Assembly (NCBI GenBank): GCA_047495785.1
Contig: JBLDXI010000024.1
Span: 1,116,001 to 1,180,000, forward strand
DNA: 64,000 bases
Direction of reading: 5' to 3'
DNA from: Lepidodermella squamata
Lineage: Eukaryota; Animalia; Gastrotricha
The translations under genes and the position numbers were made by a program. The notes under the pieces are model-generated. The model was not told the origin of the DNA and made no database searches. It saw only the letters and a list, made by a program, of their open reading frames with translations. Shown in pieces: positions 19,979-49,049 of the stretch (positions are counted from its first letter, which is position 1; every line of letters begins with the position of its first letter).

Positions 19979-22900
19979 ATGAATTTCAAAATACTCTTGA
20001 ACATTTTGGCTGCTGCAGCGGTATGTGAAAGCAAGCAGATTTTACAGGTAAAAACATGGCGAAATTCCCGATTTTGTGGCCAGTTCTGAGCAATCTATTG
20101 CAGTACTCCTCAGGGCAAAGCGGAAGCTTCAAAATCGGTTTCATGTTACCTGGTCATCGCACTATATACTCCGATTCGCCAACATCGACCAGGTATATTG
20201 TTATTACCAGAACATCTTATTTCATATCTTAGCATTGAACTTCCAGTAGCTGCTGCTGCGGCGAAATTTCGCCATCAGAGGCTCTTTTAGTGACGCATTT
20301 TAAGCGCCTGATTCGAGATGTTGAATTGTCGCGGATATTAGGCCCAGGGGTTACAATTGGTTTGGAGGTTCTCGATACATGCGGCTCGGAGAGCTTCGCA
20401 ACTGCCCAGGCTATTCATTTGCTGAAAAAGCGGGTTCAACCAGATATCGGATCTGCCGAGCCGCCGATCGCCTTTGTCGTTGGGACGTCCTACAGCAGGG
20501 TGTCTCAAACCATCGCCCCGCTGTTGCAACAGTTCGGCATTCCGCTGATCGATTACGCGGCTACGGCTGACATTTTGAGTGATCAGAATCGCTTCAGAAT
20601 GTTCACTCGAGTGACAGCGTCTGACAAGTACATGGCCCAGGCTATGGTTGAATTCGTGAAAACGAACGCATGGAACTGCGTACATCTACTCTACAGCGTG
20701 GGTCCTTATGGCGAAGCTGGCGCTGAGCAGGTTGCCCAACAGCTGTTGAATTCGAGCATTTCAATCTCGAACGGTGGTCCAATCTCGCTGCCTCTTGATT
20801 ATTCTTCGAAGGCTGACTTTGACGCGGCAGTTGCAAGAATAGCCGAGTCTAAATCTGTTCGGATCATTATTTGCTTCTGCGAGGCGACAACAACACGGGG
20901 GCTTCTACAAGCTATTAAAGACCGACCTGGATTGGGCAAATTCTACATAATTGGCGGGTGAGTTTCATCAGAAATTAGTAAGATGTACAAAAGATGCACT
21001 TACATGGATAAAAATAATGTTGGACACTTGACCGTATGGTTCCAACGCTAAATTTAAGGTTACAGCTCTAGATTTCTCAAAATATCGATGTCGGCATTCC
21101 GCGGAATCATACTTTTCGAGCGATGCAAATTTTTTAAACTAAAAAATAATAAAAAACAATCCTCCTTAACATTGTTATTTTTCTAAATATGAAGCAAAAT
21201 AAGTTGTAGGTAATCATAACTTACTTTACTATTATTTATTTAGTGACTTTTGGGACTCTGAGTTGGATTTGCGAAATCTTGAAATCGTTGCCGATCGCGC
21301 TATTTCGTTCATAACAATCACGTCTGCGCCAAAACCATTGACAGACGAAATCGGAAATATCAGCGATATCAACTCTTGGATAAGAGAAAGCTCCTATCTC
21401 CGGAAGGACACAGATCCTTGGCTGAACGGTAAGAAATCGTTAATCATTCAAAATAGGGAGCCTAAACCCAGGAGACAAAAGGCTTTGTTAAAGTATCTGG
21501 GTAGTTTTTCCTTGGCTAATTTTCCAGTATTCACAGTATTCAATTGTTAGTGCTTGTTTCGAAATTCCATAAGTTGCAGTTTCTTATGGGTAATTTTTAT
21601 GTTTATGTTGACTTGAACTTGTGCGTTCCCTTATACCTAGAGTGTTTGGAGACCTTGAAAGGATGCACGTTGGATCCTACTAATACAAATTTCGATCAAT
21701 GTGGTAAGTTTTCCTTGTTAATTATGACCTGTAAATATGTATAAATAATTTCCTCATTCAAGAGGAAACTGAGTTCAAAGTCACCGATCTACCCTATTCG
21801 GACTGGGTGAATTCACTCAGCAACGCCTTATACGCCGGTGCATTTGCTATGAAATCCCTGTTCGACGAGAAATGCCGCTCAATACCAGGCTCAGATTGTC
21901 GAATGTTCGATCCAGCAAATGACGGTGTCAAACTGTTCCAACATATTAAGAACACCACTATCCCATTGCAAGGCGGTGGAAGATTCAGCTTCTACCTCGG
22001 CCGGGAAGGTTTCCCGCTTTATCGCGTGAATCGTTTTTCAGTCGAGCACAGTGACGGCGGCACGAATTACATAAACCGGCAAATCGGAACATGGGACGTC
22101 AATAGTAAGTTCAAATTAACAGCCGACACATCTGAATATCGGGCTCCTAATGATGTCGTCTGCGCCCGGCCTTACCGCAATGAAACCTGGATCCGAGCCC
22201 CCATTGTACAGGGCGCACTTTCGCCAACGATTCTGTGCGGTAGTCAAGGCTACGGCACTACGATTATCCACAATGAACCGCAAATTAATATCAACAACAA
22301 CAACAGTGTGATTCTGCCGGTGGTTACCACGATACTCTCAGTTGCCATTCTGGCTTTGATCATCGCTGTGGCGATAATTTACCTGAAATTTCAACGGGAA
22401 CCTGATCAGAAACTAGATGACCAGACAGCCTTGGAAATTTCGCGTTTTACTCAGTATCATTTCGGAAACTGCCCCGGCCTGACAATGGACGAGAAACAAG
22501 AATTACGAGACGTTTTGCAGACCTATTACATTCCAAACAATCGCTTATTCTTTTCCAACGAAATCCTAGGTGAAGGCCATAATGGCGTTGTCTATAAAGG
22601 TCAAATGGAAGTCAACGGGGTGTGGCAGGACGTAGCCGTGAAGCAACTGAGAGGCGGTGACTCGATGGAAACTGCCAAATTTCTGCGCGAAGGCAGCGTT
22701 ATGCGCGGCTTTGACCACCCCAATGTGTTGAAGCTACTCGGCATCAACATTTTGGCGAACAATGCTGCTCAGATTATAGTGCCGTATGTTCCTAATGGAA
22801 ATTTGCGCGATTTTCTCGCGACTTACGGTCATTCGTTCATGGAGAGTGAAAAAATCAATCTGTGCCTCCAAATTTGCACGGCGATGGAGTACATTGCGAC

Positions 22901-23444
22901 GAAACAGTGTGTCCATTGCGATCTGGCGTGTCGCAATATTCTTGTCGAATCGCGGACCTACATCAATATCGTTCTCCTTGCTGATTTCGGCCTGTCCAAG
23001 CAGCTCAATGAAAGTGACTACATGAGGCCAAGCGCGGAAGAAGCTGCTTTACCCATTCGTTGGTGCTCGCCTGAAGCCTTAATAGGTGGTAGATACGATG
23101 AGAAGAGTGACGTATGGAGTTTCGGCGTTGTTTGCTGGGAAATTTTTAGCAACGGCGAGAAACCGTATCCAGGACTGAGGAATGATGAGGTTCGAAGACG
23201 TGTTATGACACTCCCCGGGTGCTATCCTGATTTGCCGCAAAGTTGCCGACAAGATTTGTAAGTTTAGCTTGCGCCCAACGAGGTTGGCGGAATCAATTTT
23301 TTTGTACTATATTTTAGCTACGATTCAATCATGCGGATATGTTGGTTCAGAGATACAGCACGAAGGCCAACTTTCAGAGAACTGCGCGAGCGAATACAAC
23401 AATTTCAGCAGTCTCGCAATGTCCAAAACGATGTTGTGGTGTGA
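19979..23444 (+). CDS. Receptor tyrosine kinase with class C GPCR (mGluR-like) Venus flytrap ectodomain, VKR-like architecture, copy 1; ~7 exons
   Basis: Signal exon 19979-20047; VFT motifs [55 protein letters not shown]; one TM helix ([25 protein letters not shown]); TK motifs [33 protein letters not shown]; last exon CWFRD..RRPTF ending DVVV*. Confidence 0.9.
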
Positions 23445-23857
23445 CTTTCCTAATTTTCTAAAAAACCTCAGTTTGCCAGCAGTTTTCGCCTTTATTCATA
23501 ATTAATTTATGTTACCATTTTCCAAATTTATCCTCGGCTTTTCTCATTTCTATTTGAGTAATTTGCTTTTTATCACAAATATAACTACTAAAAGTCTGAA
23601 AAATAGCTAGTGAAAAGCGTGTCGGGATTATGATGCATTACTGTAAGCTCTACGACGTCACCTCCCGTGACGTCACCTAACAATGGTTGACGCCTACCTA
23701 ACTGGAGGAGAATAAGGATGTGGCGTAGCTGTAGGCTGTAGCATAAAGTGCTGCGTCTGATTAATTCATATTGCATTCATCTTCAAACAATTTTTCACTG
23801 ATAAATACTCTGGAAGCTTTTGTTGTCAATAAACACTTACATAGTATATTCATGGTA

Positions 23858-24244
23858 CATGAGACGTACTATAGGACGCCGCGGCTTCGAAGCTCCCGTT
23901 ACATGGGCCTCTTGAAGGCCGCGGACTGTGCATATCGGAATGTGCATACGAATTAAATTTTATTCCAGTAATTTCGAAATTAAAGAAATTTTAATTTATA
24001 AAATTTTAATTTTTTAAATGTCAATAATTAAAAACTGATGAGAATTCTTTTACAGCAAAAGATCGGCGTGACGCTGTGTAAAGATGTGTTGATCTCGTTG
24101 ATCTTAAGCAAAAAAGAGGCTTGAGATGATAGCAAAAAGTGCAATGAGATGATTCATTGGTCGAGCTGGACTTTGGACCTCATTAAAAATATCACACGTT
24201 TTCTGATTCTCAGCAAGCTGCGGCGTCCTATAGTACGTCTCATG
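23858..24244. mobile_element. MITE with ~30-bp TIRs and 8-bp TSD (P- or hAT-superfamily-like)
   Basis: catgagacgtactataggacgccgcggctt ... aagctgcggcgtcctatagtacgtctcatg, flanked by tcatggta on both sides (23850-23857 and 24245-24252); no ORF of note. Confidence 0.9.
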
Positions 24245-25030
24245 TCATGGTAAGGAAGCGAAACTTTGTTCGTGTGCGCCATTTTTTGTTGTGTTCACCT
24301 TTTAAGCAAAAATGACAAAATCCTGCGCCGAAAATTTTAACAAGTTTTACCCTTTACAACCCTTTACAGTTTTACCGAATTTTTCTAATTTGGGCCGTGC
24401 TCCGAATAAAGAACACACCCGATTAATCGTAGCAGAATTGTAGCTTCACCAGAAAACCTAGTGAAATAAAGGCCGAACCCGAATAATCAGCGCGTGACAG
24501 AAGCCTGCGAGTGAGAAGAAGTGAGTGGCTCATGTTTTGCTTCAGCACAGCTTGATGACCCTCGCCTTAATCTATCCCTCCTTAACCCCTGTAAAAGCGC
24601 AGCTTTAACGATCGGTTGCGGGCCAATGTTTTGGGAATAGCGGAAAGGTCCAGGGGTCGCGAGGGTCGCGGAGTGATTTTCATTAATAAAAGAAAAAAGT
24701 CAATAAATGAGGCTAGGGCACGTGCTTTATCATTTGTTTACCATTTTACTCCATCCATCAGTCTTAGCAATCAAGATTTAGAGATAAATTTAGAGATTTA
24801 GCAATCAATTTAAATCCCAATTTTTTCAAACGTCATCCACACATTGAGAACAAAGTGACCAGAGTAAGCACACAAGCTAAATTTTGATCTGCATAATTAA
24901 ATCGACTGCTTTCTCAACGCAAATTTACGGATCCGCGGTGGTTTCCTCCGGCCACTAAAAGGTCGTAAAAGGCTAGTTTACCACATAAATTATTTGCTCG
25001 CACGCTATTGGTCGATTCAAAAAAAAACGC

Positions 25031-25259
25031 CGTTTTTCACCAAATTGTGCATGCATATCGAACGCGAGCTGCTCTTTTACGTGGTATAAGATTTTAGGTG
25101 GGCAATTGCTGCTCAGTCTTGATCTCATCAAAATAAATGAAACCATAGTGAAAAAGAGGTTTTTGTATCGTAACAACGGTTGGGTTGCCAACCTCAAATC
25201 TTATGCCACGCGAAAGAGCAGCTCGCGTTCGATATGCATGCAAAATTTGGTAAAAAATG
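25031..25259. repeat. Long imperfect inverted repeat (~75-bp arms), probable foldback/MITE interior
   Basis: 25031-25105 is the reverse complement of 25185-25259 (core tgcatgcatatcgaacgcgagctgctcttt / aaagagcagctcgcgttcgatatgcatgca). Confidence 0.8.
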
Positions 25260-25472
25260 GAGATATCCGCTTTGAGAATATCAGAAGGACCAAACATTGA
25301 GCTATTTTTTCTAAATTCGACCTTGACACATAATTATTTCGGATTTTTTCGCGTGTACTCTGCTCCCGTTGACGTCACTTGATGTTTTGAGCAGAAAATA
25401 TTCGAAATGATTATATCACTGAGAGGTGTTAACATCGGCTTGAATATTGTAGACTTGGTATATAATTGTCTG

Positions 25473-25606
25473 ATATAGCACGAGTAAAGAGTCTATATCT
25501 GAACGGAGCCGGCCGAGATTTACGAGTCGGAACGAGTCGAAGACGAGTGGAGATGAGTAAATCGAGTACGGCGAGTTCAGATATGAACGATTTACGAATG
25601 TTATAT
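25473..25606. repeat. Imperfect foldback repeat, probable non-autonomous DNA element
   Basis: atatagcacgagtaaa...atatctgaac versus gttcagatat...tttacgaatgttatat, with internal cgagt repeats. Confidence 0.5.
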
Positions 25607-26077
25607 ACCGTAAAATATCGAATTGTCAAAGCGACTCGACCTATATTTTTGACGACAATTCTATATTTAATAATGTAGAACGTATTGTAGTGGCTACCAG
25701 TCTTGATTTCTTGAAGTAACGACAGTGATCCGACTAGGTCCAGCTCTGAGGGGGTAAATAGAGCCATTTTGAGCCCAAAATTAGCAAATCAACAGGGGGG
25801 ACCCTTACTTGTGCCCGAAATAAATAATAGACTTGTAGCCACTACAATGATTTCAACATTATTAATTTTCGAATTAACGTTAAAAATCGAAAAAACTTGT
25901 TTTAATGCATGATACTAACGTGTCCTGGCTAACGTGTCTCAAACCCTTATCAAGCCAAGGATTACCATCTTATAGTTGATTAGTGTCAGATGCAAGAACA
26001 TTTTTAAGAGTTATTGAAAGCATGATCAAAAGTAAAAACCCAAATAAAATGGTTTTGAATGAATAGAAGTGAATATA

Positions 26078-26212
26078 AGGCAGAAACTGCGCTACTCAGA
26101 CTGCATGAAAAGGCAGTTGAAGAAAATTAATATTGAGAATTGGGAAGACGCCGCTGTATTAGCTCAGAATAGAATTGAGTGGCGTACGAAATTGAAAAAT
26201 ATCACAGATTGA
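26078..26212 (+). mobile_element. RTE-like LINE ORF C-terminal relic
   Basis: Translates as RQKLRYSDCMKRQLKKINIENWEDAAVLAQNRIEWR, matching the R..RY.D.....LK...I..W...A..R..WR pattern of RTE-clade ORF ends. Confidence 0.65.
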
Positions 26213-26339
26213 TTTTTGAATAATGAATTCATTTCGCTCATTTTTCGAACAAAAATATCGAATTTTTCATCATTTTCAAGACACATTGATTTTGGCTTGA
26301 CTTAGGATCGACTAACGTTGGTCCTCCTCCGACACTCAG

Positions 26340-26474
26340 TATGGTTGGAGGAACGCCATCATCCTTCAGACATACTGGGTACACCGGAGTGAATTTTATT
26401 TCGTTATGTGTACAGGTTTCTTTTTTGTCTTTTTGCTCTAAACGAAATAAAGAAGATGTTATGTTATGTTATGT
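26340..26474 (+). mobile_element. Probable non-LTR retrotransposon 3' end with (TGTTA)n tail
   Basis: T-rich segment, AATAAA, then a tgttatgttatgttatgt tandem tail. Confidence 0.35.
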
Positions 26475-27729: not shown

Positions 27730-30700
27730 ATGAGTTTTAAAATACGAATTTTACTATTGAACTTATTGTTGGCTGCAGCAGTATGTGAAATCAAGCAGAT
27801 TTTACAGGTAGAAGCATGGGGAAATTCTCCATTTTATTCGTTAGTTCTAGGCAATTTATTGCAGTACTCCTCGCCGCAAAGCGGAAGCTTGAAAATCGGA
27901 TTTATGTTACCTGGTCATCGCACCAAATTCTCCGGTTCGCCAACATCGACAAGGCATATTGTTCCCAGAAAATTGTATTTTAAATGTTATTATTGATATT
28001 TTAATATAGTTGTTGCTGCGGCGAAATTTCGCCGTCGGAGGCTCTTTTAGTGACGCATTTTAAGCGCCTGATCCGAGATATTGAATTGTCGCAGATATTA
28101 GGCCGAGGGTTTAAGATTGGGTTCGACGTTCTCGACACATGCGGCTCGGAAAGCTTCGCAACTGCCCAGGCTATTCATTGGCTAAAAAAACGGGTTCAAC
28201 CAGACTTTGATTCTGATGAGCTGCAGATCGCCTTTGTCGTTGGCCCCCGTTACAGCCGGGTGTCTCAAGCCATCGCCCCGCTGCTGCAACAGTTCGGCAT
28301 TCCGCTATTAGATTACAGCGCTACGGCTGACATTTTGAGTGATCAGAATCGCTTCAAGATGTTCACTCGAGTGACAGCGTCTGACAAGTACATGGCCCAG
28401 GCTATGGCTGAATTCGTAAAAATAAACGCATGGAAGTGCGTTCATCTGCTCCACAGTGTTGGTCTTTATGGCGAAAATGGAGCTGAGCAAGTAGCTCAAC
28501 AGCTGTTGAATTCGAACATATCGATTTCGAACGGTGGACCGATCGCGCTTCCTCTTAATTATTCCTCGACGGCTGATTTTGACGCAGCAGTTGCAAGAAT
28601 AGCCGAGTCTAAATCTGTTCGGATCATTATTTGCTTCTGCGAGGCGACAACAACACGAGGGCTTCTTCAAGCTATTAAAGACCGACCTGGATTGGGCAAA
28701 TTCTACATCATTGGCGGGTGAGTTTCATCAGAGTCCCATTGATCCCATTGATGCTATCATATCGACCATCAGAGCAACACGTAGTTGGACTTTGACTCCG
28801 CATAATCTGGCCTAAGATGGTAGGGTTCCAATGCTAAATTTGAGGTTACAGCTCTAGATTATTGGCGGCTGAGTTTCATTAGAAATTGATTACTGTGTTA
28901 TAAGCCAAGTCCGAAAGCGACCACGTCGTAATATGCTCAGCCAGGATTCGACGAGCCTGCAATCTCTCTTATCAAACACCTTTGTCCGGTCCTGCTCATA
29001 GGTGTGAACCCATGTACGGCAGGCTCCAAACTGAGAACAATGGACGCGTGGCCCTCCGCAGTCGGGCCCTGGCTCGTACGCGCGTGAGAGCCAGCGTACG
29101 GCTGGACAGTGCGCACGCGCGTGTCTATTAATCTCTATTTGGAACCCTCCCAGGTTATAAAGTTTAAGCCGAAGCGAAAAGTGCTTGATCAGGAAAATTG
29201 CATCCCGGATTCCGGTCGACCAGAGCGTGACGTGGAAATCGACCATGGCCACGTCAGGGTCGCTTTCGGCCTAGGGTCTTCACTGCCGCAACCAAAATAC
29301 AGCGCTGGTGGAACTTCAATTTTACAAATAATACCAAGTGCTCCTCTGTGTGCAACACATTATCTTTACTTGTATTCATTAGTTATTACTAAAGCAAAAT
29401 AAGCAGTACTGAATACTCGTCTTTGATATTTTTAGTGACTTTTGGGGCGCGGCGTTTGATTTGCGAAATTTGGAAACCGTTGCTGATCGTGCCATTTCGT
29501 TCAGAACAATCACGACTGCGCCAAAACCTTTGACAGTTGAAATTGGAAACATCAGCGATATCAACTCGTGGATAAGAGAAAGCTCCTATCTCCGGAAGGA
29601 CACAGATCCTTGGCTGAACGGTAAGAACATCTGAAATTTCAAAATAGAGAGCTCAAACCCTATTCATTCGGTATTTGATTTCTGTATTAATTGACGTTTT
29701 TGCACTTCTTATCAAAATTTGCTGTTAGGAGACCTGATACTTCCTTCATTTGATTTACGTTGGTCAATGACTCTTATTACTTCCCTATTCCCAGAGTGTC
29801 TGGAAACCTTGAAAGGATGCACGTTGGACCCTACAAATATAAATTTCGATCAGTGCGGTAAGTTTTACTAGTATAATAATATGTGGTATTGTAAATTAGA
29901 GAGAAATTATTTTATTCAAGAGGAAACTGAGTTCAAAGACACCGATCTTCCCTTATCGGATTGGATGAATTCAGCCAGCATCGCCTTATACGCCGGTGCT
30001 TTTGCTATGAAATCCCTGTTCGATGAGAAATGTCGCTTAAATCCTGGCGCCGATTGCCGAAAGTTCGATCCAGCAAATGACGGTGTCAAACTGTTCCAAC
30101 ACATTGGGAACACCACAATCCCATTGCAAGGTGGTGGAAGCTTCCGCTTTTACCTTGGCCGAGAAGGGTTCCCGCTTTATCGCGTTAGTCGATTTTCAGT
30201 GGAACACAGCGATGGTGGTACGAATTTCATTTACCGCCAAATCGGAACATGGGATGTCAATAGTAAGTTCAAATTAACAGCCGACACATCTGAATATCGG
30301 GCACCTAATGATGTCGTCTGCGCCCGGCCTTACCGCAATGAAACCTGGATCCGAGCCCCCATTGTACAGGGCGCACTTTCGCCAACGATTCTGTGCGGTA
30401 GTCAAGGGTACGGCACCACGATTATCCATAATCCACCGCAGATTACTATCAACAACAACAACAGTGTGATTCTGCCCGTTGTAACGACGATACTCTCAGT
30501 CGCCATTCTGGCTTTGATCATCGCTGTGGTGATAATGTACCTGAAATTTCAAAAGGAACCTGACCAGAAACTAGATGACCAAACAGGCTTGGAAATTTCG
30601 CGTTTTACTCAGTATCATTTCGGAAACTGCCCCGGCCTGACAATGGACGAGAAACAAGAATTACGAGACGTTTTGCAGACCTATTACGTTCCAAACAGTC

Positions 30701-31681
30701 GCTTATTCTTTTCTAACGAAATCCTAGGTGAAGGCCATAATGGCGTTGTCTATAAAGGTCAAATGGAAGTCAACGGGGTGTGGCAGGACGTAGCCGTGAA
30801 GCAACTGAGAGGCGGTGACTCGATGGAAACTGCCAAATTTCTGCGCGAAGGCAGTGTTATGCGCGGTTTTGACCACCCCAATGTGTTGAAGCTACTCGGC
30901 ATCCACATTTTGGCGAACAATGCCGCTCAGATTATAGTGCCGTATATTCCTAATGGAAATTTGCGCGATTTTCTCGCGACTTACGGTCATTCGTTCATGG
31001 AGAGTGAAAAAATCAATCTATGCCTCCAAATTTGCACGGCGATGGAGTACATTGCAACGAAACAGTGTGTCCACCGCGATCTGGCGTGTCGCAATATTCT
31101 TGTTGAATCGCGGACGTACATTAATATCGTTGTCCTTGCTGATTTCGGCCTGTCCAGGCAGCTCAATGAAAGTGATTACGTGAGGCCAAGCGCGGAAGGA
31201 GCTGCTTTACCGCTCCGCTGGTGCCCACCTGAAGCCTTAATAGGTGGTGCATTCGATGAGAAGAGTGATGTATGGAGTTTCGGCGTTGTTTGCTGGGAAA
31301 TTTTCAGCGGCGGCAAAAAACCGTATCCCCGACTTAAGAATGATGAGGTTCTAAGTCTTGTTATGACTCACCCTGGGGGCTATCCCGATTTGCCGACAAG
31401 TTGCCCACAAGATTTGTAAGTTTAACTGACGCTCAACGGAGTTAGCGTGAAAAATTATTTTTGCTGTACTCCACTTTAGCTACGATTCAATCATGAAGAT
31501 ATGTTGGTTCAGAGATAAGACACGAAGGCCAACTTTCAAGGGACTGCGCGAGCGAATACAACAATTTCAGAAGTGCCGCAATTCTCTGATGAGTTCCGCC
31601 TCTTCTGGATTTCCCAGCTACTCTCGGCAAGCGAGTCAAAATTCGTCACGATTAGCAGAAGAACACGGTGTGTTAGTGTGA
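27730..31681 (+). CDS. Receptor tyrosine kinase with mGluR-like Venus flytrap ectodomain, copy 2; ~7 exons
   Basis: Recent paralog of 19979-23444 with the same exon layout; canonical HRDLACRN; longer Ser-rich tail ending HGVLV*; intron 2 has a GC donor at 27954. Confidence 0.9.
28897..29282. mobile_element. Unclassified GC-rich insertion in intron 3 of receptor copy 2 (solo-LTR-like or TIR element)
   Basis: Absent from the paralogous intron; begins TGTTATA and ends TTCA; subterminal inverted motif ccgaaagcgacc / ggtcgctttcgg; internal tataaa; no clean TSD. Confidence 0.45.
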
Positions 31682-35425: not shown

Positions 35426-36600
35426 AGCAGCTGATCATTATGAATAAATTGAATAATATGTCGATTTGTTGTTAAAAGCTTCAACCCTTTATTCTATATT
35501 GAATGCTCAAGTCTAAGTGCAAATTCCCCGATCAGCCCTAATATGAACATAGTTGATCGGTACTTTTCTCTGATAACCCAGTCTTCGCCTCCGTATTGGT
35601 CATCCTCCATCAAATCGGGTGGATATTTTCGTTCTTTCGGAAATATCCTGCCTATCGAGGCACGCAGCTTCTCGATTAGGCTGAAACCAGGCAAACCGAT
35701 TTTAGCCTAAAGCTTCATTCTCTATTCCAGCACGAAGCCACCTATTAGTCGCTGTGTATAATCCTCGGCTGACAACCTCGCGTTGAAGCAGCCATGTTAC
35801 GTGGTTATTGACTCGATGAATGGGATTGCCACGCGCTAGTAGTAGTATCGATTGATGGCGGGCAGCTTGTTGTTGTAAATAACTGACGATGTTGGCGTAT
35901 CGATAATACGAGCAGCAACAAGTTGTTTGAAAAATTCTCAGGAATGCGCGTTCTAAAAAACGGCACTCGAACCGGTATCGGCAGTAACCTCAGAAAATTG
36001 AATATTTGAAACATTTGGCGACGATGAACACCAAACATTATGTCTAAGAACTCGTGTTGACGCACTCGTGCTGTTGACTCGGCTTGAGCCTCGTTTAATC
36101 ACCTCGGCTTCGTCCCGACGATGAAAATAACGTTTGACGGCTATCATCGCAAAACAGTTAAATAAGAAATAAGAATACGTGTTCTGCTTCATCAATGACT
36201 CACGCTTGAGTTCCTTGAGATTTTAGATTATCTGATGTTTGATGTTTCTAATACTGCCATGTATCTGTCTTGTTCTTGCTCGTCATTCAGTTGACAGCTT
36301 TTCGCTATGATGATGAAATTTAGGGTACGCACATTGCTCATTTCTGATCCATCCACGACTCATGGCTGAAAGATTAGGATATCCCTCGTAATTTGAGATT
36401 TTAGATTGCCTGTTTCATTGGTGGCAACTGCGAGCTCTTATTCCATGTCTGATATTTTGCTAGTTCGTTGCCCTCCTTAATTTTACGCCACCCTTGTTGG
36501 CGATTGTTGATATTTTCGATAGCTCTTATTTGAATTTTAGGTTTTCTCATGGCTCACAGCTCATGAGAATTTTGTGATATTCCGTTGGTCACTTGCAGCA

Positions 36601-39600
36601 ATGCTCACGCGCTTCTACGCGTTGGTTGTTTGCCTTCTTCTGCCAGTTAACTTGGTCGCCGAAAATTGGAGACGGCTCGATATCAAGTTAAACGAAACCT
36701 TCCAGGGCAATGTAGAAGTGTTTGGAAGAGGTAAAGATCCGCGTTATTTATACACGATTGCGGATGCGAAGCCCAACGCTCAGCCCTTCAGTCTCAACAA
36801 GTACAGTGGAGCTCTGGTAGTGCTGCCCAAGGGATTCGATTTTGATAAGGGGCCGGAATTCCGCCATTATTATTTGTGGATCAAAGTTACATCTCAATAC
36901 GATAAAACAAGTAATACATGATTTGCTATTGGTATATTACCTGTGGTAATTTAACTGTTGTCTGTCTTAGTGAACGATACTTTCCCAGTCAAAATAGAAG
37001 TTCTGGATGTCAACGATAAACCGCCGGCATTTGTGAATGAGCCTCGCGTGTTGATGGCCAGCATAGCTGCTACTGCTTCCGTGGGTTCCTTTGTTTTCCA
37101 GCTTAATGCAACTGACCCAGATTCCACCGCGATTATCCGCTACTCTCTCACAGATTTCGTTGCTAAAGGTAATTAGAGCTTTTCATTTGCATTACCTGTC
37201 TCAAGTCAATAATTGTTCAGGGAGATTTGTCATCGACCCTTCATCCGGCATCATCCGCCTGGGCCGTGTTGGATCGTTGAGTAGTACCGCGGGAACGCGG
37301 TATGAGTTAGCGGTTGAAGCGAGAGATATCAGGGGAGAAGTTAACAATCCCCAAATCGCGAAATCACGCCTTGTAGTGATTGTTGATCCAGTGAAGCCGC
37401 AGTTCTATGAGCCGATGACGTCCATCAATTTCAACGAAAAGCAACCTGCTAATACACTGTAAGTTTGTTTCTTAAAAATTGTCGTTTAATCAGTTGGTTC
37501 GGCTTATTCAGGGCGTGGACAGTCAGAGCTAAGTCGTTTCAGCAGCAGTTTCTCAGCTACTCTATGACGGGCTCGTCAGCAGCGATGTCCGCTTTCTCTC
37601 TTGATGCTGCAACTGGTGCTGTAAGATGCACGCGTCTTCTAAATTTCGATAACATCAAGGAACCTCGATATTACAACTTCACTGTTTCTGCAACCGAACT
37701 TGGACCACCTGGTTTAATTGCGTCGGCGCCTTTAGTTATCAAATTGGCCGATGTTAACGACCACCCGCCAGTATTTCAGTTATCAGACTTTAATCTCGAG
37801 CCGATCCGTGAGGATGCACTTCTTGATCGAACTCTGTTTACATTCGAGGCTACGGACGCGGATTCTGACGAAAACGGTCAAATTAACTATGAGTTGATTC
37901 CAGTTTTAGACCTGGCTTATAAATTCGGCCATGCGGAAGATTCCGGCAGCTTCACTGTTGTTAAGGAAACTGGAGAGCTAAAGCCAGTGTTACCCCTAGA
38001 TTATGATCGCACCCCGAGCCGGGCTTATTGGTTCCGTGTTTCAGCCTTTAATTTGAATCCGAACAAGTCTCTTTCAACTACCGCCAGAGTTCGAGTTCCT
38101 CTGCTCAACGTCAATGACGAACATCCGGAATTTTTGGTGGACAGCTTGAATGAAGGTTTTGAAACCTATTTGATGGAAGATGCTCCAGCGTCGAAAAATA
38201 TTGTCGTTGGCGTCGTGCGTACCGACGATCCTGATGGTGACAACGTATTTTATGGCATCGTTAATTTCGCAACGATTCCCAGCGCACGTGAGTATTTTTT
38301 ATTAATTTCAGTATTGGGCATAAATATTGGGCAGACTTTATTCCCACATGCCCATGCTTTATGATACATGTGGTAGAAGTGGTAATAGTGATGAAAAGTG
38401 AAAATGATCATAATAATTATTTTTTGTTTAGCTGTGTATAGTTTATTTCCTTTTGCCATCGATCGTGTCAGCGGCGTCATTCGTCAGGTCGGACCGTTGG
38501 CTCCTGGTGTTTCCGCCTACGTGCTCAACGTGTCGGCAGAGGATGACGGCTCGTGTTGCAACCAGCCGTTTAACTCGCGCCACATCAGTTACACCAAATT
38601 CATTATCAATATTCAAGACGTAAATAACAACCGACCGAAACTTGACTGCAGCGCTTGCAACGGAACTACAATCAAAGAGGGCCAGTATGCTAATGAGACT
38701 ATTTGTAAACTGAAAGCCACCGACGGGGATCTTGGCGATAACGGAATGGTTCGGTTTTCGTTACGTGGGAAGGATTTCTTCACCGTTGACCCGGAAACCG
38801 GTTCCGTTTCTGTTGTAAATGCTAATTTGAACCGTGATAAAATGGGCGGTCGTCATTGGATATACCTAACCGGTATTGCCGTAGACAATGGCAAACCTCG
38901 CCTAAGCGATTACTGCACTTTCCAAATAACGGTTTGTGTAAACGAAAAACTGTTTGAACTGTTTGAAATGACCTGAAAAATAATAGATTGAGGACGCAAA
39001 TGATAGCAAGCCGATGCTTGATCTTCCACTTGATTACAATTTTTACGTCGGCAGTCTTTCTCCGGGAACAACAGTCGCAGTTCTGTCTGCGATCGATAAA
39101 GATACCGGACCTAACGGACAGGTAAAGAAAGTATTTCGCATCAGATTTTCTTTATACTGGGTTTTATAGGTCAGCTTCTACGTCGAACCGTCGTCACAAC
39201 TTGCCGATTTCTTCGTGACTGAGTCCAGCCCCGAGCAAAACTCGGGTGTTGTGAAAATTGCAGATGGCGTCGATGAGCTGCAATTGCAGCGCTTGGCTGA
39301 TTCGAAGCGGAAAATTGTTCTTCCACTGATCTTACGCGATCATGGAATGCCGGCGTTGTCAACGAACGTCTCAATTAACATCCAGCTGAGTACTGGCGGT
39401 GAATTGCGACCAGTTTGGGACGAACAGAAAAGCTCAATCGTTCTCGCTATTAACGAAACCACGAAACCTGGATTCACTATTGCGAGTCTTACCGCTGGAG
39501 TCCCGGGTCACGATGGCAGTATTCGTTATTTGATTCCGACTCGCGACACCAATCCGAACGAATTTTCGAAGAGCATTCCTTTTTCGTACGAAACGGAAAG

Positions 39601-42600
39601 TACGGGAAGGAAGTCTGTCCGAATTTACCTCGACAGCCCTATAAACGCCGAAGTCAAAGACCGATACGTGTTTTCAGTCCGAGCAACGGTATGCGATGAT
39701 AAAATATATAATTTTATTTCATATATATTAAAGGCTATCTCAAGAAAATTAAAGTGAACTTTTTCAAGGGATTCTATTAAAGTTATTAAGTATGGAGAAT
39801 ATACCGGGGAACAGTAATGGAACACCCATGAACATCTGGTTGTATGTGTATAAAAATGGTTGCCGTTTTTGTTTACCTCAACAGAGCTCGCCAAGTCAGC
39901 TGTCAATTGACCGCCTAATCAATATCACTATTCTCGACGTGAACGACGAGGTGCCGTTTTTTCTCAACACCGACCCCGACAATAACTGTTACTACGGAAG
40001 TTTCCCGGAAAACCCTCTTAACGTGGGTATCCTGGTGGCAACGGCAAGAGCGGACGATCTTGATACGACAGCCCCTAATAACGTTATCTCGCGCTACGAA
40101 CTGCGCTACACCGATGAAGAGGATGCCGGTCAGTTCCTTGTAACCATAGTATCATCAAGTGAGAAAATCACTTCCGGCTAAACGTGAGAAATGAGATTGA
40201 AAAATCAAATTCAAAGACTAGCTTCCAACTTAACAATCATTAACAATTTTTATACCAAATATTGAACCTTGTAATTTCAATTTCAGGTAAATTCGTCATC
40301 GATCCAAAAACAGGGGAAATCAGAACAAACAGCACTGATTTCGACTTTGAAAGGAAGCAGTTGTACTCAATAGGTATTGTGGCTTTTGATGGCGCTTCAA
40401 GTCCTTTGAATGGCTACACTGGCCCTAATGTCGGCGAAACGTTCCTTCAAATTCAAATTTTGGATGTCAATGACAACCCACCTCAATTTTCGAACAAGAC
40501 CATCGACGGCGTGATTGAGGAGCATGCGCCGCGTGGCACCAAAGTTCTGCAAATTACGGCAATCGACCTTGATCAATGGGATGAATTGCAATACGAAATA
40601 ATGTCAGGCGATCCTCAAGGCGTTTTCATCGTTCGAGGCGACGCAATTCACGTTAATAATCCACTGAAATTGAATGCTGATATGGTCGATGAATACAGTT
40701 TGGTTTACCGTGCATTCGACAACCAATTTTCAGCTTTCATCAATGTAACAATCCGAGTCACGAATATAGTCGATGAGCCGCCGAGTTTTGTTCAGCAGTT
40801 ATACACAACACAGCCTATCGTTGAAAATGACCCTTCTAATCGCTTCTTAGTCAAAGTTGACGCGATGAGCAAGGAAAACTCAACTCTTCGTTTTTCACTA
40901 GCCGGCGATCAGTCCTCTCAGTTTTCGATTGTGAATAACGAAATTTGGTTGTCGAGCCCGCTTGATCATGACATTTTGACTGGTGGCCATCCGAAATACT
41001 TGTTCAATGTCGAAGCTTATGATAACGAGGGAAGGAAGCTAGGCCTTTTCGGTAGTGCTGTGGTCGAAGTCCCAGTTGTCGATATCAATGATAACGCGCC
41101 CGTTTTTCTGCGAGATACCCTTGTCGGCGAGGTGAAAGAGGGTCTCATAGAAGTTCAGACTGTGCTTCGGGTGGTGGCAATCGACGCTGATGCTGGTCGT
41201 AACGCGGAAATAACTTACGGATTAGCCACTCAGCAGAACTCGACAGAATTCGAGTTGGACGAGCGAAGTGGATTACTGCGAACTGTTTTTGGCTCGAAAT
41301 TAGAACGAGCTAATCCACCTAGCCCGATATTGCTGACTGTAGTAGCCAGTGACAGTGGCTCGCCGTCACTTTCTACCACCGAGACACTCACGATAAGTGT
41401 TGTAGATATCAATAACCACTCGCCGAAATGCTCGATTCCAGAGCAGAATATTGAAATGTTTGAAGATGCGTCCTCCGAAATGCCGATCGCTATGGTCGCT
41501 GCGACTGACAACGACGACCCGGATTCGCCGAATGGAATGTTGGATTTTATGCTGGACGAGGAATCTCAGACATTGTTCCTTTTATCAATCAACGAAAATG
41601 TCGGCTATATCTATCCGAAACCTTATGTCGTTGATTACGATCAGTTGAGATTGGAACAAAGCACAAGAGATCCTCGCATCGACCTAGAAATTACTGTCCT
41701 AGATCGAGGATCTCCGGCGATGGCGGTGGCGACTTGTCGAGTTAATGTCACGGTTAGGAATGCTTACGATAACCCACCGCGCTTTTCACCGTCATGGGAC
41801 CAGATTTCCATTCGAGAAAACTTGGCTTTAAGAACCGTGGTATATCAAAATTTCTCGGTAAAAAATGGCGATTCTAGCTCTGGTAAATTCACGTACCGTA
41901 TCGTTGAATCGACGAATCGACGGAGGCAGTTTGACATTTCGCCAGAGTCGCAACATACAAGTCGTCCGGTTCTTACATTAGTCGAGAGGCTTGATCGTGA
42001 GACGGTGCCTGATTATTGGCTTGAAATTCTCGCCATCGACGACCAATCGCCCGAAATGACTGGAACCGCCACGTTGTCCATTGTTTTGATCGATGTCAAT
42101 AACCACCCGCCTCACTTGGCGCCGCTCGATTCACCGGCCATTGTTGCCGAGCGGACTTCGATAAACCCATCACTAGTAATTGCTACTATAAAAGCCGAAG
42201 ACCCTGATACACCGGCCTCAAACGGACACGCATTTGGCTTTGAACTCGACTGTCAATCAGATCCGGCGATTTGCGACAAATTTACGCTGGATTACAATTA
42301 TACTGGATCAACAGCTCGTGTTTATGTAAAAGCCCATGCTGAACAGTTCAATCGAACTATGAAGTCGAGCTATCAACTGCCAATTGTCGTTTGGGACAAC
42401 GCGGTTAGAGGCGGTAAAACGTCTTCATCCTTGTCTTATCGGGATTACTTAACAGTAATAGTCGCCGGAGGTGATTACTACCCACATAAATCTGCTCATA
42501 AAGAGATCTCAGTCATGCTATACACCGATTGGCTGAGGAGGCCTGAGTTTGAATGGATCGCTGTTGGCCGTCCATTCGTCCAAGACAAAGATGACTTGGA

Positions 42601-44977
42601 CTTTCCATACAAACAGTTCAAAATTACTCGAAGCTCCAACACTTCAGTTGTTGGATTCAAGCCTGATAGTGGGCAAATCATGATTTACGCGCCCAAAGTT
42701 CAACCTGGTACTTATGAGCTGCAATTTCAAATCATCGACGATAAATTGAATGTGGAAGCAAATTCTAGTGTTACAATCAACGTCGAAATTTTGCCGCAAA
42801 TTTTTCTATCCGGCGCGCATTCCCTTCGACTCAATGGTCTATCGTCCTTTCAAGTCGTTAGTGCTGGTGAGACACCTGCGCGGACTAAGCGAGACGTGTC
42901 TTCTGCATATGTCAGTAGCCGTTTGTCCCGCCTGCGAAACACCATTGCCGCAATTTTTAATGTTGATGTTGTAAATGTGACAATGCTATCGGTTTCCGAC
43001 GTTCCGGCTATACCTGGTTACTTACCGAATGGCCCAAGATCGCCAGCCACTGACGTGTTTTTCACGATTGCTGACCAAACTGGGAATTTTGACCCGAAAT
43101 TCAGCCGCGATTTTGTATCATCTAAGCTATTGGCAAATAAGCGCCAAATTGAGGAGACTGTGGATGTTGAAATCAGCGGCGCACCCGGTGACGCTTGCAG
43201 CCCTGATCCGCTGTCTGTTTGCCCGAATTCCGACTCATGCTTCACAACTATTCAGCTGGATGATACGAGCCCGTTGATGATTGATGCGAATGCAACGCCG
43301 TTCGTCAGTGTTAAGCTGTCAATGGCTCCGGCTTGCAGTGGTTGCCCGGCTGCTTCGGCCATCGATTCTGTCAAAACATGTAGCTGTATCGCGGGTCGTG
43401 GAACCTGTTTGAACGAAACCCATCCATCCGGCTGCTCCTGCACCGCTCCTTTCGACGGACCTCGCTGTGAAATGACTTCACGCTCATTCCAATGGCCTGG
43501 TGGTGGCTATGTAGTTTTGCCTTTGAAGCCATTCCCGACTGCTTGTAACTCCGGAACATTCAAAATGGAAATTCTCCCGAATCAAACCAGCACTGATACT
43601 CTGGTGATGTTCCTCGGCGCAACTTGGTTGTTGCCTAATGCGACAAATTGTCCGTTTTTGATGCTCGAGATAATTTCTGGCCAGCCGCAGTTGACTATAG
43701 ACCTTTGCTCGGCTTCCACTCTAACGCCGACAGTCATGCGTTTGGGAAATATTGGAGACGCACTGGCACCTGGAAGATCTTTCCGGCTGGAGGTTACGTG
43801 GTCAGGGGCCAAATTCACCATGATGTCACCAGATTGCCGGAGCCCGTGCGCCGTCACTGCTGTTGTGCCCGGCCCTGGTCGCCTGTTGACTGGTACAAGC
43901 GTTGTACTGCTCGGCGGGAAGCCTTTACCCGGCGAATTCCAGCTCGACGAGATCGCTCAATTGAAGCAAACCCGCTCAAGCAATTTTTCAGGCTGCTTAC
44001 GCAATTTGTGGATCAACAATGAACTGTATGATTTGTGGCTCGATGGTATGGACGCAACGTATGGCCGAACTGTGCCTGGCTGTCCTAGCTCATTTCTGGC
44101 GTGTAACGCTGATTTGACAACAACAAAACCTGCTCAATCCGCCACCACATCGATAATGAACGCTGCGACCCCGACTAGCATGCAATGCAACAACCCGACG
44201 CTGAGTCAGTGCGCGTCCGCTGCTAATCGACCGGCCTACTGCCGATGCAAACCAGGTCATTCGGGTAAATTCTGCGAAAACGAGACGGTTCCGTTTAGTT
44301 TCGGCCAGCAGAGCTTTATTCGCTGGGAAATGCAGCCTAGCGAGGTCAGCATTCAGTCTGCCTACATCGAAATGCAAGTTTCGTTCCGGAGCCGCGATCG
44401 GGATGGAATTTTATTCTGGCTTGACTCGGCTCAAGTTTTGAGCCAGCAAGTTATGAGCAGGCGCCGGATAAACGAACCCGATCACGTTGCTCTGCTCATC
44501 TCCAGCGGTCTTCTGGCTGCGAAAATTCAGTTACCGCCGATGAAAGAATCTGATTCAATCTACTACCGATCTTTTGACTTGCCTAGTGTTGTAGACGGCG
44601 CTTGGCACACGGCGTTGTTGACGGTTGATTTCGTGGCGTGCTCGCTTCGCATGAAGCTAAACCACGGCCAGGGCGCATCGCACAACATGATGTGGCCGTT
44701 ACCCGATTCAGTTTGCAGTCCAACATCGCGCAGCCCCGTATTCCTCCTCGGGCCTGCTGGGTTTTGGTACGCCGGTGGTCGGCCTGACGTTGTTGGATCG
44801 GAGGATTTGCAACTTAACAACGCGTGTTTGCAAGATGTCAGAATCAATGGCTATGTACTCCCGATGTCAGCATCTGAGACGACCAGTCCGCTGGCCAAAG
44901 TCGTTGATTCGCAGGGTGTCTCTAGCGGGTGTTCAGCCGTTCCATCACCGGCGCCTCGAGACTTTTCGGTGTTATAA
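36601..44977 (+). CDS. DN-cadherin-like (type III classical-type) cadherin ectodomain: ~15-16 cadherin repeats, RTKR site, EGF-LamG-EGF-LamG; no TM or cytoplasmic domain seen
   Basis: Signal MLTRFYALVVCLLLPVNLVA; many DxND.P, AxDxD and LDxE motifs; EDDGSCC motif; EGF (CSCTAPFDGPRC, CRCKPGHSGKFC); LamG (FSGCLRNLWIN, SFRSRDRDG, VDGAWH). About 9 exons, the last ~40288-44977. Confidence 0.88.
39740..39860 (-). mobile_element. CR1/L2-like LINE reverse transcriptase relic in cadherin intron
   Basis: Minus strand reads HYCSPVYSPYLITLIESLEKVH, resembling the EYCSPVWSP....I..LE.VQ motif C-terminal to CR1/Jockey-group RT domains. Confidence 0.65.
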
Positions 44978-45699
44978 TTATAATTTGTAATAACGAATCT
45001 GTAATTTAATTATTATAATAAATTTAATTATTGTTTATTAATTTGCATAAGCAATTATTACAGAAATCAGATTGAAGCAAAGCCGAGTCGGCATGACACA
45101 AAATAACGCCAATCCATAAATAATATAAACGATATGAACGAGGGAGTGTCTTATCGTCGTCGACATCGTCTTATACTATTATTTTTCGTTCCTTATTTTT
45201 GGTTTCAAGTTTTTCGAGTCGCAGTATTTTCCTAGCCTTCGCCGCCTTTCCGCGGCAATTTTGAACTCGTCACGCGTCCATAAGCCGAACCAACGCCAAC
45301 TCTGGACCCCGAACAACCGATCGCGGCAGTCGTCAAGCCTCTCAGAAATTTTGTTCCTTTTAGACTCCTGCTTCTCCCTAGAACCCAAGAATATTTGCCG
45401 TGACCTCATTTTGGATTTTGGGACATAACTGGCTCAAAAATGTTACAGATGTAGGGGGTCTTTTGAAGATCATCGGCAGACAACCAGTCTTTGAGCTTTC
45501 AAAATTAATGTAATGACATCAATTTTCGGCCAAATCGCCCAAAGTACCCATTTCACCCCTAACGACGGTAGTCTGAATTATTGCAATAAAAAATTTATTA
45601 GAGAAATTTGAAATTTCGTTCAACCGGTATCAAATTGTAACACGTATTTTTGGAACACTGACGGTAGAAATTAGCATAATATATCACGGCAAAATGATT

Positions 45700-48600
45700 T
45701 CACACATGGAAATCACAACCGTTTGAAGTTACATTACACCGGACTGGTTTTGGCTCCATGTACTGGTGGCTGATATCTGTCGATGCTGTACTGTTTCCAC
45801 CTGAAGATCTACTCGCATCTTTGTCGGCTCGAAGAATGTTCAGCAACTCGCTGAATCGAGGCCTTGCAAGCCGATGCGGCAACCAACAACGCTTCATAAT
45901 TTTGAAATATCTGAAAAATTAATAATTGAATTAGTTTCAAATTATCTTGATACGAATTTTCTTACAAATCTGTTGTGCAGTGAAGAGGTTGATCAGGGTG
46001 GCCGGAGTATTTGCTGACGAAATCGAAAACTTCAACATTCGATCGGGTATCATAAGGCCGCAGGCCATTTGAGCAAATTTCCCAGCAAACAACGCCAAAA
46101 CTCCACACATCACTTCGCTCCTCGAACAAAAAGCTTGACTGCAGCGATTCAGGCGGCCACCATCGGATGGGAATTGGCCGATTACGATCAATTGGCTTGT
46201 AGTACTCTGACTCATTCAAATGCCTCGCCAGGCCGAAATCTGACAGTTTCAACAGAGTCATGTAAGGCAAATTTTCGACAAGAACATTTCGGCAGGCCAA
46301 GTCGCGATGGATGCAATTTTTCGAAGCTAAATAGGTCATTGCCGAGCAGATTTGGGTCATGAAGTTGACTCGATCCTCCATAGTCAAACTCACGCCTTTG
46401 TTCGATAAATAGCTACGCAAATCGCCTTCAGCCATGTAAGGAACCACGATTTGAAGACTCTGGCTATCTCGCGAGACGCAGATTCCGATCAATTTTAGAA
46501 TATTCACGTGGTTGAACGAGAACATTACAGCACTTTCGCGGATAAAGTCCAAATTTTCACTCGGTGATTCAGATCTCAATTGTTTAATCGCAACGTCTTC
46601 GAGGCCCTTCGGAGTTTTGAAGAATCCCTTATAGACAACGCCCTTACTACCCCGTCCTAACACGTTGTTTTGAGAGATGATCAGCGAGCTGCTGTCAATT
46701 GATGCAATCAAGAAAAACTGGCGCAGCTCGTCGCGTTCTGTCTGGGTCATCAGCGTGTTCGTGTCGTCAGCAATTATTGCGTCAATATAGGTCATTGCTT
46801 CGTTAATTTGTACGTATTTTTCGGCCTTGCGATTTTCCTTCGATTTTGATGATGCTTGGCGCACGTATAAAATAACTACACATATGGCAAGGCATGCTAC
46901 GATTGCCGATAAAACAGCCGCAACGATCGGCAAAGTTATGTTGGATCGAACTTGCTCGATTTGAGCTCCGGTCACCAAGTACTTCGTTGATAGAGAGTCA
47001 CATGCTAAAAAAGATTGAAAATTAATTATACAATTAAAAATTGTGAATAATTGTTTTTTAATTAAATTTAAAATTTATTAAAATTTAAAAATATTTTTTG
47101 TTACCATCATAGCAGGGAAAAACCGGTGTTTCATCGGCATGTTCGCTAGCTTTGATCACCTTACTCGCCGTGCAATTGACCCGACATAGCCCATTAGCGG
47201 TGCAGTTATTTTCCGGCTTTGCGAGGTACCACGTAACGTCGTCATTAATCGCGAGAACTTTGTCGATTTCCCAGTTTCCTAACGGTTTGTAACCGTAAAC
47301 TTCAGACCCAGACGATGTGAAAGACCTCGTGTAGCGGAATATGTCGTACTTTGGATAACCATCGCCTTGTTTGTAGAACGAGAAAGTTCGGTAGTTTTCG
47401 GTGGGAAATGAGACATTTAAAATGTGTTTGTACAGAGCGTAACCGTCGACAGAGACGTCGAAGTAAGAGGAATTGCAATAAAGAGGACTTAAGCGACATC
47501 GCTCGGTGTAGAAACTTCTGAGCCCGAACACGCCTGCGTAGATAGCATTGCTTATACTATCGAGGGCATCCGAATTAGGAAACTGCATGTCACCGAAATT
47601 TCTTTCGTCTAAAATTCAATAAATTTGCCAATAAATTATCAAAACATCAAAAACAAACCGCAAATTGAGTAAGATGAAGTTCTGTTCAGGGAGCACGGCT
47701 TGTTTTGAGTTTCGAAATATTCTAATACGAAAAAACGTTCATCTATCGGATGAAAAAATGGAAATATTTTACCGTTCAACCAAGGGTCTGTCTTTTCGTC
47801 CAAGCCTTGAAATATTTTCGTTGCCAGCCATTCTCGAAAATTGCTGTTCTTCTCATTCGGGTTTGATCGCATTTTCCCAGCGGAGGTACTTGGCCTGAAA
47901 GTTATCGACCACTGAGCTGCATTTTGCTGATTTGGCAAGGTTAGTTGGGATCCCCAAAAATCTCTGGAAAGTTAAGCAATAAAATAACACTCGGTTTTGC
48001 CATCAAAATTTACCCCGCAACTATGAATAATTTCGGATCCGGAATCTGAGCTAGCTTTTCCTTATTGCTCTGCTTTATCAGGGCATCCAACAGGCCTGAT
48101 ATTGAGGTAGCTTCACAGAAGCAAATTATAGGCCTGATTTGCCGATTTTCTAAAATTTTCGCAACGGCTTGGTCAAAATTAGAGTCGAGAGATTGGTTCA
48201 AAGGTAGGAGGATAGGTTGACCGCCCGCGATGCATACACTGGAATTCAGCAGGTGTTGGGCGACTGCCTCTCCGCCATTTTCCCCGTAGGCACCCTCGCT
48301 GTAAAGCAGATGGACGCATTTCCAGTCGAAACGACCAACAAGATCAGCAATCGCCTTCGCTAGGTAAAAATCTGAAGGCGAAGCCCGAGCGTAGAGGTTG
48401 TATTGGCTTCGGTCACTGAGTGCTGGTGACGTAGCGCTGTAGTCAATCTAAAAAAGCAGTTAATTATTAAAAAATCTTCCTTAATTAATTTACCATTGGA
48501 ATGCCGAAAGCAGCGAAATCTGGCGCGACTTTTTGAGCAACGCGACTGTAGCCGGCGCCAACTACAAAGGCAAGAGGCGGTGAACTCGGCGCTCTCGTCC

Positions 48601-49049
48601 GCCGTTTCACCAGCCAGTCTAAAATTTGCGATTTTGCATAGTTCTCCGATCCGCACGAGTCGACAATTTCGTAGCCGAGTTTTATTCCGTTCGGAAGAAT
48701 TGGCGGTTTGGCGTTATTAACATCCTCAATTATGCGACGGAATTGAGATATTAAAATCGCTTGATTATACGCTATTGTGCCACAAATGCTGAAATTCAGG
48801 CGTGAATAGACGAAAAAAATTGAATTTTAATTAATTTTACCTATCATCGCTTTGAAGACTGACTTTTGTGAACCGAGCAGGTACAAGGTAATTTACGGAA
48901 ATGGTTCCAGGATTCGGGGAAGATGTCTGAAAGTAAAAAAAATAGTTTTTTAATCGCATTAAAATAGTAATTTTAAATACCCTTAGAATTATTGCATGAG
49001 ATAAACCAGCTCCAATAAGCAAGACTAAACAGGCAAATTGGTGTGGCAT
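45700..49049 (-). CDS. Receptor tyrosine kinase with mGluR-like Venus flytrap ectodomain, copy 3 (diverged); ~9 exons
   Basis: Signal MPHQFACLVLLIGAGLSHA; ILPNGIKLGYEIVDSCGS, VVGAGYSRVA, DYSATSPALSD, YARASPSD, SEGAYGENG, DPWLNEYFE; TM helix; GRGSKG, VAIK, HRDLACRN, DFGLARHLNESEYY, SDVWSFG; tail ends DFHV*. Confidence 0.9.

Follow-up and report, generated by a model that had tools for sequence, protein, structure and literature searches.

A probable separate origin for a family of Venus flytrap receptor kinases in the gastrotrich Lepidodermella squamata

Introduction

Receptors that combine an extracellular Venus flytrap (VFT) with an intracellular tyrosine kinase are treated in the literature as one monophyletic invertebrate family, the Venus kinase receptors (VKRs). 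We take as the comparison set SmVKR1/2, AmVKR and AaVKR (Ahier 2009, PMC2680970; Vanderstraete 2013, PMC3703292) and as the mark of the family the VKR signature GY(V/I)WFLPxWL (Vanderstraete 2013, PMC3703292). Flytrap-type receptor kinases have also been described from choanoflagellates, namely UTK12 of Monosiga brevicollis and RTKS of Salpingoeca rosetta (PMC3703292, PMC4026697). Here we analyse three flytrap-kinase genes found in a stretch of 64,000 nucleotides (the window; contig JBLDXI010000024.1 of assembly GCA_047495785.1, positions 1,116,001 to 1,180,000 of the forward strand) from the gastrotrich Lepidodermella squamata. The window is eukaryotic DNA of ~42% GC with very short introns; the paper on the genome of this species gives 43% GC and leaves kinases and receptors unmentioned (PMC11660948). 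Comparisons of both domains with solved structures, with a canonical VKR and with metagenomic relatives lead us to propose that these genes probably stem from a gene fusion of their own, in which a flytrap of the class C type found in metabotropic glutamate receptors (mGluRs) was joined, once, through a single transmembrane (TM) helix to a kinase of the MET/AXL group, and which is represented here by three members.

Results

Gene models were assembled from open frames and splice sites, with gene 1 modelled by collinearity with gene 2. Gene 1 lies at 20056..23444 on the forward strand (exons 20056-20192, 20247-20957, 21244-21428, 21641-21703, 21763-23257 and 23318-23444). Gene 2, also forward, occupies 27730..31681 and encodes 958 amino acids (aa) in six exons (27730-27953, 28010-28717, 29436-29620, 29795-29857, 29921-31415 and 31480-31681), the reading frame of which was checked. 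Gene 3 is on the reverse strand at 45700..49049 and encodes 963 aa in nine exons (48981-49049, 48841-48926, 48494-48788, 48014-48447, 47773-47963, 47659-47721, 47105-47608, 45966-47004 and 45700-45910); its introns are all GT-AG and 46-100 nt long, and its frame stays open through all of them. Five intron positions are common to genes 2 and 3. A tblastn scan of the window revealed no further copy beyond these three genes.

As an initial annotation made from the letters of the window had proposed, Pfam, hydropathy and the gene models agree that each of the three genes encodes a flytrap that is connected to a tyrosine kinase by a short stalk and one TM helix. In gene 2 the flytrap spans ~aa 50-505 (27877..30255, exons 1-5), with ANF_receptor found by Pfam in the open reading frame (ORF) 28050-28721 at 1.7e-34, the TM helix ~aa 577-602 (30469..30546, Kyte-Doolittle peak 3.06) and the kinase aa 655-922 (30703..31570, interrupted by the intron 31416-31479). 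In gene 3 the TM helix covers ~aa 572-597 (46856..46935, reverse strand, Kyte-Doolittle peak 3.15) and the kinase aa 656-924 (45820..46681, reverse strand), and the intron 47005-47104 lies between the TM helix and the flytrap exon. Pfam finds PK_Tyr_Ser-Thr in ORFs 21807-23261, 29881-31419 and 45962-46978 at ~1e-65 to 1e-69 (by gene, 1.1e-64, 4.6e-66 and 1.1e-68 for genes 1, 2 and 3). Kyte-Doolittle hydropathy gives a single strong hydrophobic helix between flytrap and kinase in each gene, as well as an N-terminal signal-like stretch in genes 2 and 3. The stalk is ~60-70 aa long, with two cysteines in genes 1 and 2 and five in gene 3. The nine-cysteine domain and the seven-transmembrane (7TM) region of G protein-coupled receptors (GPCRs) of class C are both absent, as had been noted, going by Pfam and by the one hydrophobic helix: no Pfam domain, NCD3G included, was found in the gene 3 ORF 47085-47588, where the flytrap ends and the greater part of the stalk is encoded, and the gene 2 ORF containing the stalk matches kinase families alone, with no NCD3G.

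Flytrap and kinase are parts of one polypeptide, because in genes 1 and 2 they share an exon, because contigs of run X1 are spliced across the upstream exons, and because in a relative the whole protein is a single ORF. The shared exon encodes the flytrap C-lobe together with the TM helix and kinase (e.g. the uninterrupted ORF 29881-31419 of 512 aa). The X1 contigs, which join the upstream flytrap exons, skip four of the five gene 2 introns, with joints at 27953>28011, 28716>29435, 29856>29921 and 31415>31480; the ends at 28716>29435 and 31415>31480 are GT..AG, and intron 1 (27954-28009) is GC-AG, backed by its X1 joint, with GT at the equivalent site of gene 1. The 718-nt intron of gene 2 has no depth in run X1 and is covered by DNA run X2. 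In the relative, P0151, which is the nearest one in the databases, a single intronless ORF of 890 aa on a metagenomic scaffold accommodates ANF_receptor, TM helix and kinase. The fused layout that had been read from the window alone is thus borne out.

The same gene 2 intron (intron 2, 28718-29435) has a peculiarity of its own, being 718 nt long as against 286 nt in gene 1. Its depth in DNA run X2, mainly over ~28730-29010, is 10-15x that of its flanks, which suggests that a repeated element has been inserted there.

Similarity rankings and motifs place the flytrap with mGluRs and their class C relatives, in agreement with the initial annotation, which had called it mGluR/CaSR-type. Searched against the PDB, the N-terminal flytrap exon of gene 2 matched mGluR1 at 8e-26, T1R3 at 2e-16 and CaSR at 3e-15, and the full flytrap of P0151 matched mGluR4 at 7e-33, with the best 56 chains all mGluRs and CaSR following at 1e-15; GABA-B chains were not found among the best 60 solved chains for the flytrap query. 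The opposite ranking is obtained for P0214, a canonical VKR of 1393 aa which was recovered by protein searches and behaves as VKRs do in the literature: for its flytrap the values are 4e-53 with GABA-B1 and 4e-13 with mGluR5. In BLAST the window flytraps align to mGluR-type GPCRs over 460-610 aa at 1e-19 to 1e-31, and to the flytrap of P0214 over 80-118 aa at E 0.16 to 1e-5. Motifs follow the same division, since P0214 carries GYVWFLPPW, i.e. the VKR signature, while GY(V/I)WFLPxWL occurs in none of genes 1-3, P0151 and P0033. The window flytraps have instead the mGluR-type GDFWG, and where mGluR1 reads IAYSATSIDLSD the window family has IDYSATSPALSD.

The disulfide cysteines of the flytrap are kept. 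In the alignment with mGluR1 (1ewk), S165, S186, T188, D208, Y236 and D318 are conserved and Y74, R78 and K409 are not. We take the six conserved residues to be the contacts of mGluR1 with the alpha-amino-acid moiety, and R78 and K409 to be its contacts with the glutamate side chain. Past the flytrap the two groups part, as mGluR-type GPCRs run into the cysteine-rich domain and 7TM region and the window proteins into the stalk and one helix. On the ectodomain side, an independent fusion is well supported by these rankings and motifs.

The kinase seems to have a different affinity from that of canonical VKRs. Against the PDB, the gene 2 kinase has MET as its first receptor kinase (5e-48), followed by ROS (5e-45), and a profile built from six kinases of the family also finds MET first (1.6e-75), then Eph. 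In both the single-sequence and the profile searches, INSR and VKR2 (7zvs) fall outside the best 60 PDB matches, whereas the kinase of P0214 matches INSR at 9e-85 and the VKR2 of S. mansoni (7zvs) at 5e-80. In a maximum-likelihood (ML) tree of 35 kinase domains, genes 1-3, P0151, P0004, P0033 and the kinase fragment P0105 form a family clade (support 99/99), which sits at 98/89 within a group made of MET and AXL/UFO-type kinases (the MET/AXL group), the inner branching of which is not firm. P0214 is found outside this group, in an area of the tree with ROS and MuSK-like rows where it too has no firm place. In the N-lobe, the motifs resemble those of MET, and the MET-like character of the kinase claimed initially is favoured by ranking and tree. 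Pairwise identity, on the other hand, separates little, as the window kinases are 29-37% identical to VKR, ROS and MET kinases alike.

The catalytic motifs are informative in part. Gene 2 has GEGHNG, VAVK, HRDLACRN and DFG intact; in gene 3, HRDLACRN and DFG are present and the activation loop contains a YY pair. Both genes look capable of catalysis. The motifs quoted in the initial annotation are all present, except that gene 1 reads HCDLACRN and not HRDLACRN. That annotation had cautioned that HRDLACRN would also suit VKR- or ROS-type kinases, and rightly so, since the motif is common to P0214 and to ROS-like and MuSK-like kinases; P0033, the most basal member of the family, has HRDLAARN. 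The loop tyrosines are YY in gene 3, P0151 and P0033, and a single Y in genes 1 and 2; in every family member the first loop tyrosine is lost, with the segment reading RWxPPE, while P0214 has the insulin receptor-type YxxxYY loop and MAPE. The lack of YxxxYY had been offered as a difference from insulin receptors. The loss of the first tyrosine is confirmed, but it cannot serve to divide MET-like from insulin receptor-like kinases, because YxxxYY is also a feature of the MET family. Taking ranking and tree together, an independent fusion is favoured on the kinase side.

The family appears to be old. Genes 1 and 2 are tandem copies, 88.7% identical, with dS of 0.27 and a ratio of nonsynonymous to synonymous substitution (dN/dS) of 0.24, while the identity of gene 3 to them, taken along the whole protein, is 37-38%. 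Hence the initial suggestion that the family is expanding locally holds for the pair of genes 1 and 2 and not for gene 3, which is an old paralogue in a family older than the species. From flytrap through kinase, genes 1/2, gene 3 and P0151 align collinearly at 36-38% identity, and the nearest kinase to that of gene 3 is P0004/P0152, at 53% identity and with support of 97/88. P0151, P0152 and P0153 come from one metagenome sample (ERZ23486787), and each has flytrap and kinase parts. Because the paralogues are collinear at such identities, five intron positions are common and the metagenome relatives have both parts, these comparisons indicate that the fusion is a single ancient event, which took place before gene 3 and genes 1/2 split and before the split from the metagenome organism.

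The contigs of ERZ23486787 (L001, L002 and L004) are those of one eukaryote with at least three paralogues of the flytrap-kinase family, in genes that are almost intron-free; the neighbours of P0151 are three Glyco_transf_92 genes and one Peptidase_M13 gene. In a search of 1.84 billion representative proteins, the P0004 and P0006 clusters stood alone among the best 150 matches in being collinear through the flytrap C-lobe, TM helix and kinase. Word-indexed searches returned little: for the whole P0151 protein at E 1e-20 only its own cluster (P0006), for its flytrap one mGluR3-like protein, one class C GPCR and one Haliotis protein, and for its full length mostly Eph receptors and one canonical VKR. 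For this reason the reference sets for mGluR, CaSR, GABA-B, VKR and INSR are sparse. A feature search of the protein atlas gave generic kinase clusters only. In P0001, P0002 and other top database matches, one predicted protein contains a series of 3-10 tyrosine kinase domains; these are probably tandem arrays of receptor kinases merged by gene callers on unannotated eukaryotic contigs.

Gene 1 departs from its sister copy in two respects. Its start had been placed at 19979, but this ATG is out of frame owing to a 1-nt deletion relative to gene 2, and the earliest ATG in frame comes at 20056, for which reason the N-terminus is uncertain. A 5' intron that would restore the frame of ATG 19979 was considered and discarded, as no GT..AG option works. 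In the catalytic loop a single CGC-to-TGC change has turned HRD into HCD. From its alignment with gene 2 we read gene 1 as a recent tandem copy of that gene with an altered 5' end and the HRD to HCD change. The low dN/dS (0.24) argues against a long-standing decay.

Directly upstream of the flytrap-kinase genes are two ionotropic glutamate receptor (iGluR) genes, 9213-13335 and 14528-18489, both on the forward strand, with ANF_receptor amino-terminal domains in ORFs 9213-10367 and 14528-15715 and with Lig_chan and Lig_chan-Glu_bd in ORFs 11902-12423 and 16395-17117 (all forward). A large cadherin gene (~36574-44977, forward) is found between genes 2 and 3, and its Cadherin repeats, Laminin G and DE-cadherin Ig-like (Ig_Shg) domains have the layout of invertebrate classical cadherins. 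The other neighbouring genes encode a trypsin-like serine protease (3660-4673, forward), an ABC-2 type transporter membrane domain (51625-52311, reverse) and a Sushi-repeat protein (56164-57594, forward).

Discussion

The combination of an mGluR-type flytrap, the lack of the VKR motif and a kinase that falls within the MET/AXL group agrees with the initial idea of a flytrap-kinase receptor assembled separately from VKRs. If so, receptors of this kind were likely invented at least twice in animals, with the fusion described here taking place in a spiralian lineage, possibly that of gastrotrichs, and later giving rise to several old paralogues.

A number of points weigh against an independent fusion. 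The kinase tree included one canonical VKR (P0214) and no INSR sequence. In approximately unbiased (AU) tests, joining the family to P0214 cost 16.2 log-likelihood units (p 0.079) and joining it to P0214 together with the ROS and MuSK-like rows cost 17.8 units (p 0.059), and neither arrangement was rejected. The cysteine of HRDLACRN and the PPE that stands for APE are common to P0214 or ROS-type kinases. The ML tree of the flytrap, with 11 rows and the iGluR amino-terminal domains of the window as outgroup, gave no resolution (AU p 0.44 for a union with VKR). As to the spliced contigs, X1 is a public run whose RNA status is the tool's guess, and the contigs could derive from gene 1 as well as from gene 2. 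Separate phylogenies of flytrap and kinase, which the initial annotation had put forward as a way to decide, were built, and with the references used neither of them is decisive. Since the 11-row tree does not resolve, the argument from the flytrap is one of similarity ranking and motifs and not of phylogeny.

These points have to be set against what the alternatives would imply. One could imagine a VKR whose ectodomain was swapped, the GABA-B-type flytrap having been replaced by an mGluR-type one through exon shuffling while the insulin receptor-like kinase diverged strongly, in which case only the ectodomain would be independent. The AU test on the kinase leaves the family a place as sister to P0214, HRDLACRN is common to both, and PPE has been reported in some VKRs. 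We nevertheless regard such a swap as unlikely, since the free ML tree has the family in the MET/AXL group and forcing it together with P0214 costs 16 log-likelihood units, since MET and Eph rank above INSR and VKR2 for the family profile, and since the canonical VKR kinase is near INSR (287 bits) while the window kinases reach at most 167 bits to any solved kinase. It is highly unlikely, in our view, that the genes are fast-evolving orthologues of canonical VKRs, with both domains inherited from a VKR ancestor and made unlike by divergence. The overall architecture is the same, the equivalent of Ser165 is kept as in VKRs and the tree tests do not decide; however, divergence cannot create a specific likeness to another family, and what is found is mGluR matches of 1e-26 to 1e-33, motif-level identity with mGluR1 (IDYSATSPALSD versus IAYSATSIDLSD) and GDFWG, with GY(V/I)WFLPxWL absent and the VKR flytrap reached at E 0.16 to 1e-5 over 80-118 aa. 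Such descent of both domains is already made unlikely by the reciprocal PDB rankings of the P0214 and P0151 flytraps.

Two further explanations concern the function of the genes and the identity of their kinase. Non-signalling or decaying copies, that is pseudogenes or pseudokinases left by a large receptor kinase expansion, would fit the upstream ATG of gene 1 being out of frame and its HCD for HRD. But genes 2 and 3 are open across all exons and have the full set of catalytic motifs, dN/dS is 0.24 for genes 1/2, spliced contigs exist and paralogues are kept in a second organism, so that we consider decay very unlikely. Truncated receptor guanylyl cyclases, which would consist of ANF_receptor, a TM helix and a kinase-homology domain, are brought to mind by the atlas neighbours, these being nematode 'guanylate cyclase' clusters with ANF_receptor and PK_Tyr (score 0.89-0.90). 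Here, however, Pfam finds no cyclase domain, the frames stop 36-39 aa past the kinase, the catalytic loop is the HRDLACRN of tyrosine kinases, with intact DFG and glycine loop, and the top PDB matches are true tyrosine kinases, which makes a cyclase origin scarcely credible.

If the genes do come from a fusion of their own, a mechanism can be proposed by analogy. The cysteine-rich domain and the 7TM region would have dropped away from the flytrap, which would have retained the disulfide cysteines and the alpha-amino-acid contacts. A small amino-acid-like ligand, probably not glutamate, would close the cleft of the flytrap, as in mGluR flytraps and VKRs, and this closure may rearrange the receptor dimer or induce it. 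The kinases would then trans-phosphorylate the activation-loop tyrosine or tyrosines and signal onward as in canonical VKRs.

Should the independent fusion be true, a second family of the same layout, built from other parent domains, would amount to an evident instance of convergence in receptor design. It would mean that the ligand pocket of a class C GPCR is able to drive a single-pass kinase, so that an extracellular amino-acid-like signal could lead directly to phosphotyrosine signalling, and one could ask how closure of the flytrap is coupled to two very different outputs. There would be a consequence for annotation too, as naming every protein with ANF_receptor and a kinase "VKR" would be wrong for the genes in the window. 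In full-text literature searches we found no paper on an mGluR-type flytrap joined to a MET-type kinase.

How does the family compare with the known systems then? With VKRs it has in common an extracellular VFT, one TM helix, an intracellular tyrosine kinase and the Ser165 equivalent, a contact of the amino-acid carboxylate, and the working mode is probably alike, with a small molecule or amino acid as the ligand that gates the kinase; for VKRs, free amino acids such as L-arginine count as activators. It differs in both parent domains: the flytrap is GABA-B-like with GY(V/I)WFLPxWL in VKRs and mGluR-like with GDFWG here, and the kinase is insulin receptor-like with YxxxYY and MAPE in VKRs and of the MET/AXL group, with the first tyrosine lost and RWxPPE, here. 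To mGluRs and other class C GPCRs the flytrap is homologous end to end, sharing the cysteines and the alpha-amino-acid residues, but the nine-cysteine and 7TM domains are missing, the output is a tyrosine kinase and not a G protein, and R78 and K409 are not kept. Among solved kinases those of MET/RON and AXL match best, and they also stand next to the family in the tree, with similar N-lobe motifs, at ~33-36% identity; the window family lacks, however, their Sema-PSI-IPT or Ig-FN3 ectodomains, having ANF_receptor only, while a true MET in our set (P0094) has Sema, PSI and TIG domains. A MET-like two-tyrosine docking tail was not seen by eye in the window family. Finally, choanoflagellate UTK12 and RTKS, which belong to unicellular relatives of animals and which we set beside the window family by their description only, are flytrap-kinase layouts beyond the canonical VKR clade, and show that a fusion of this kind can recur.

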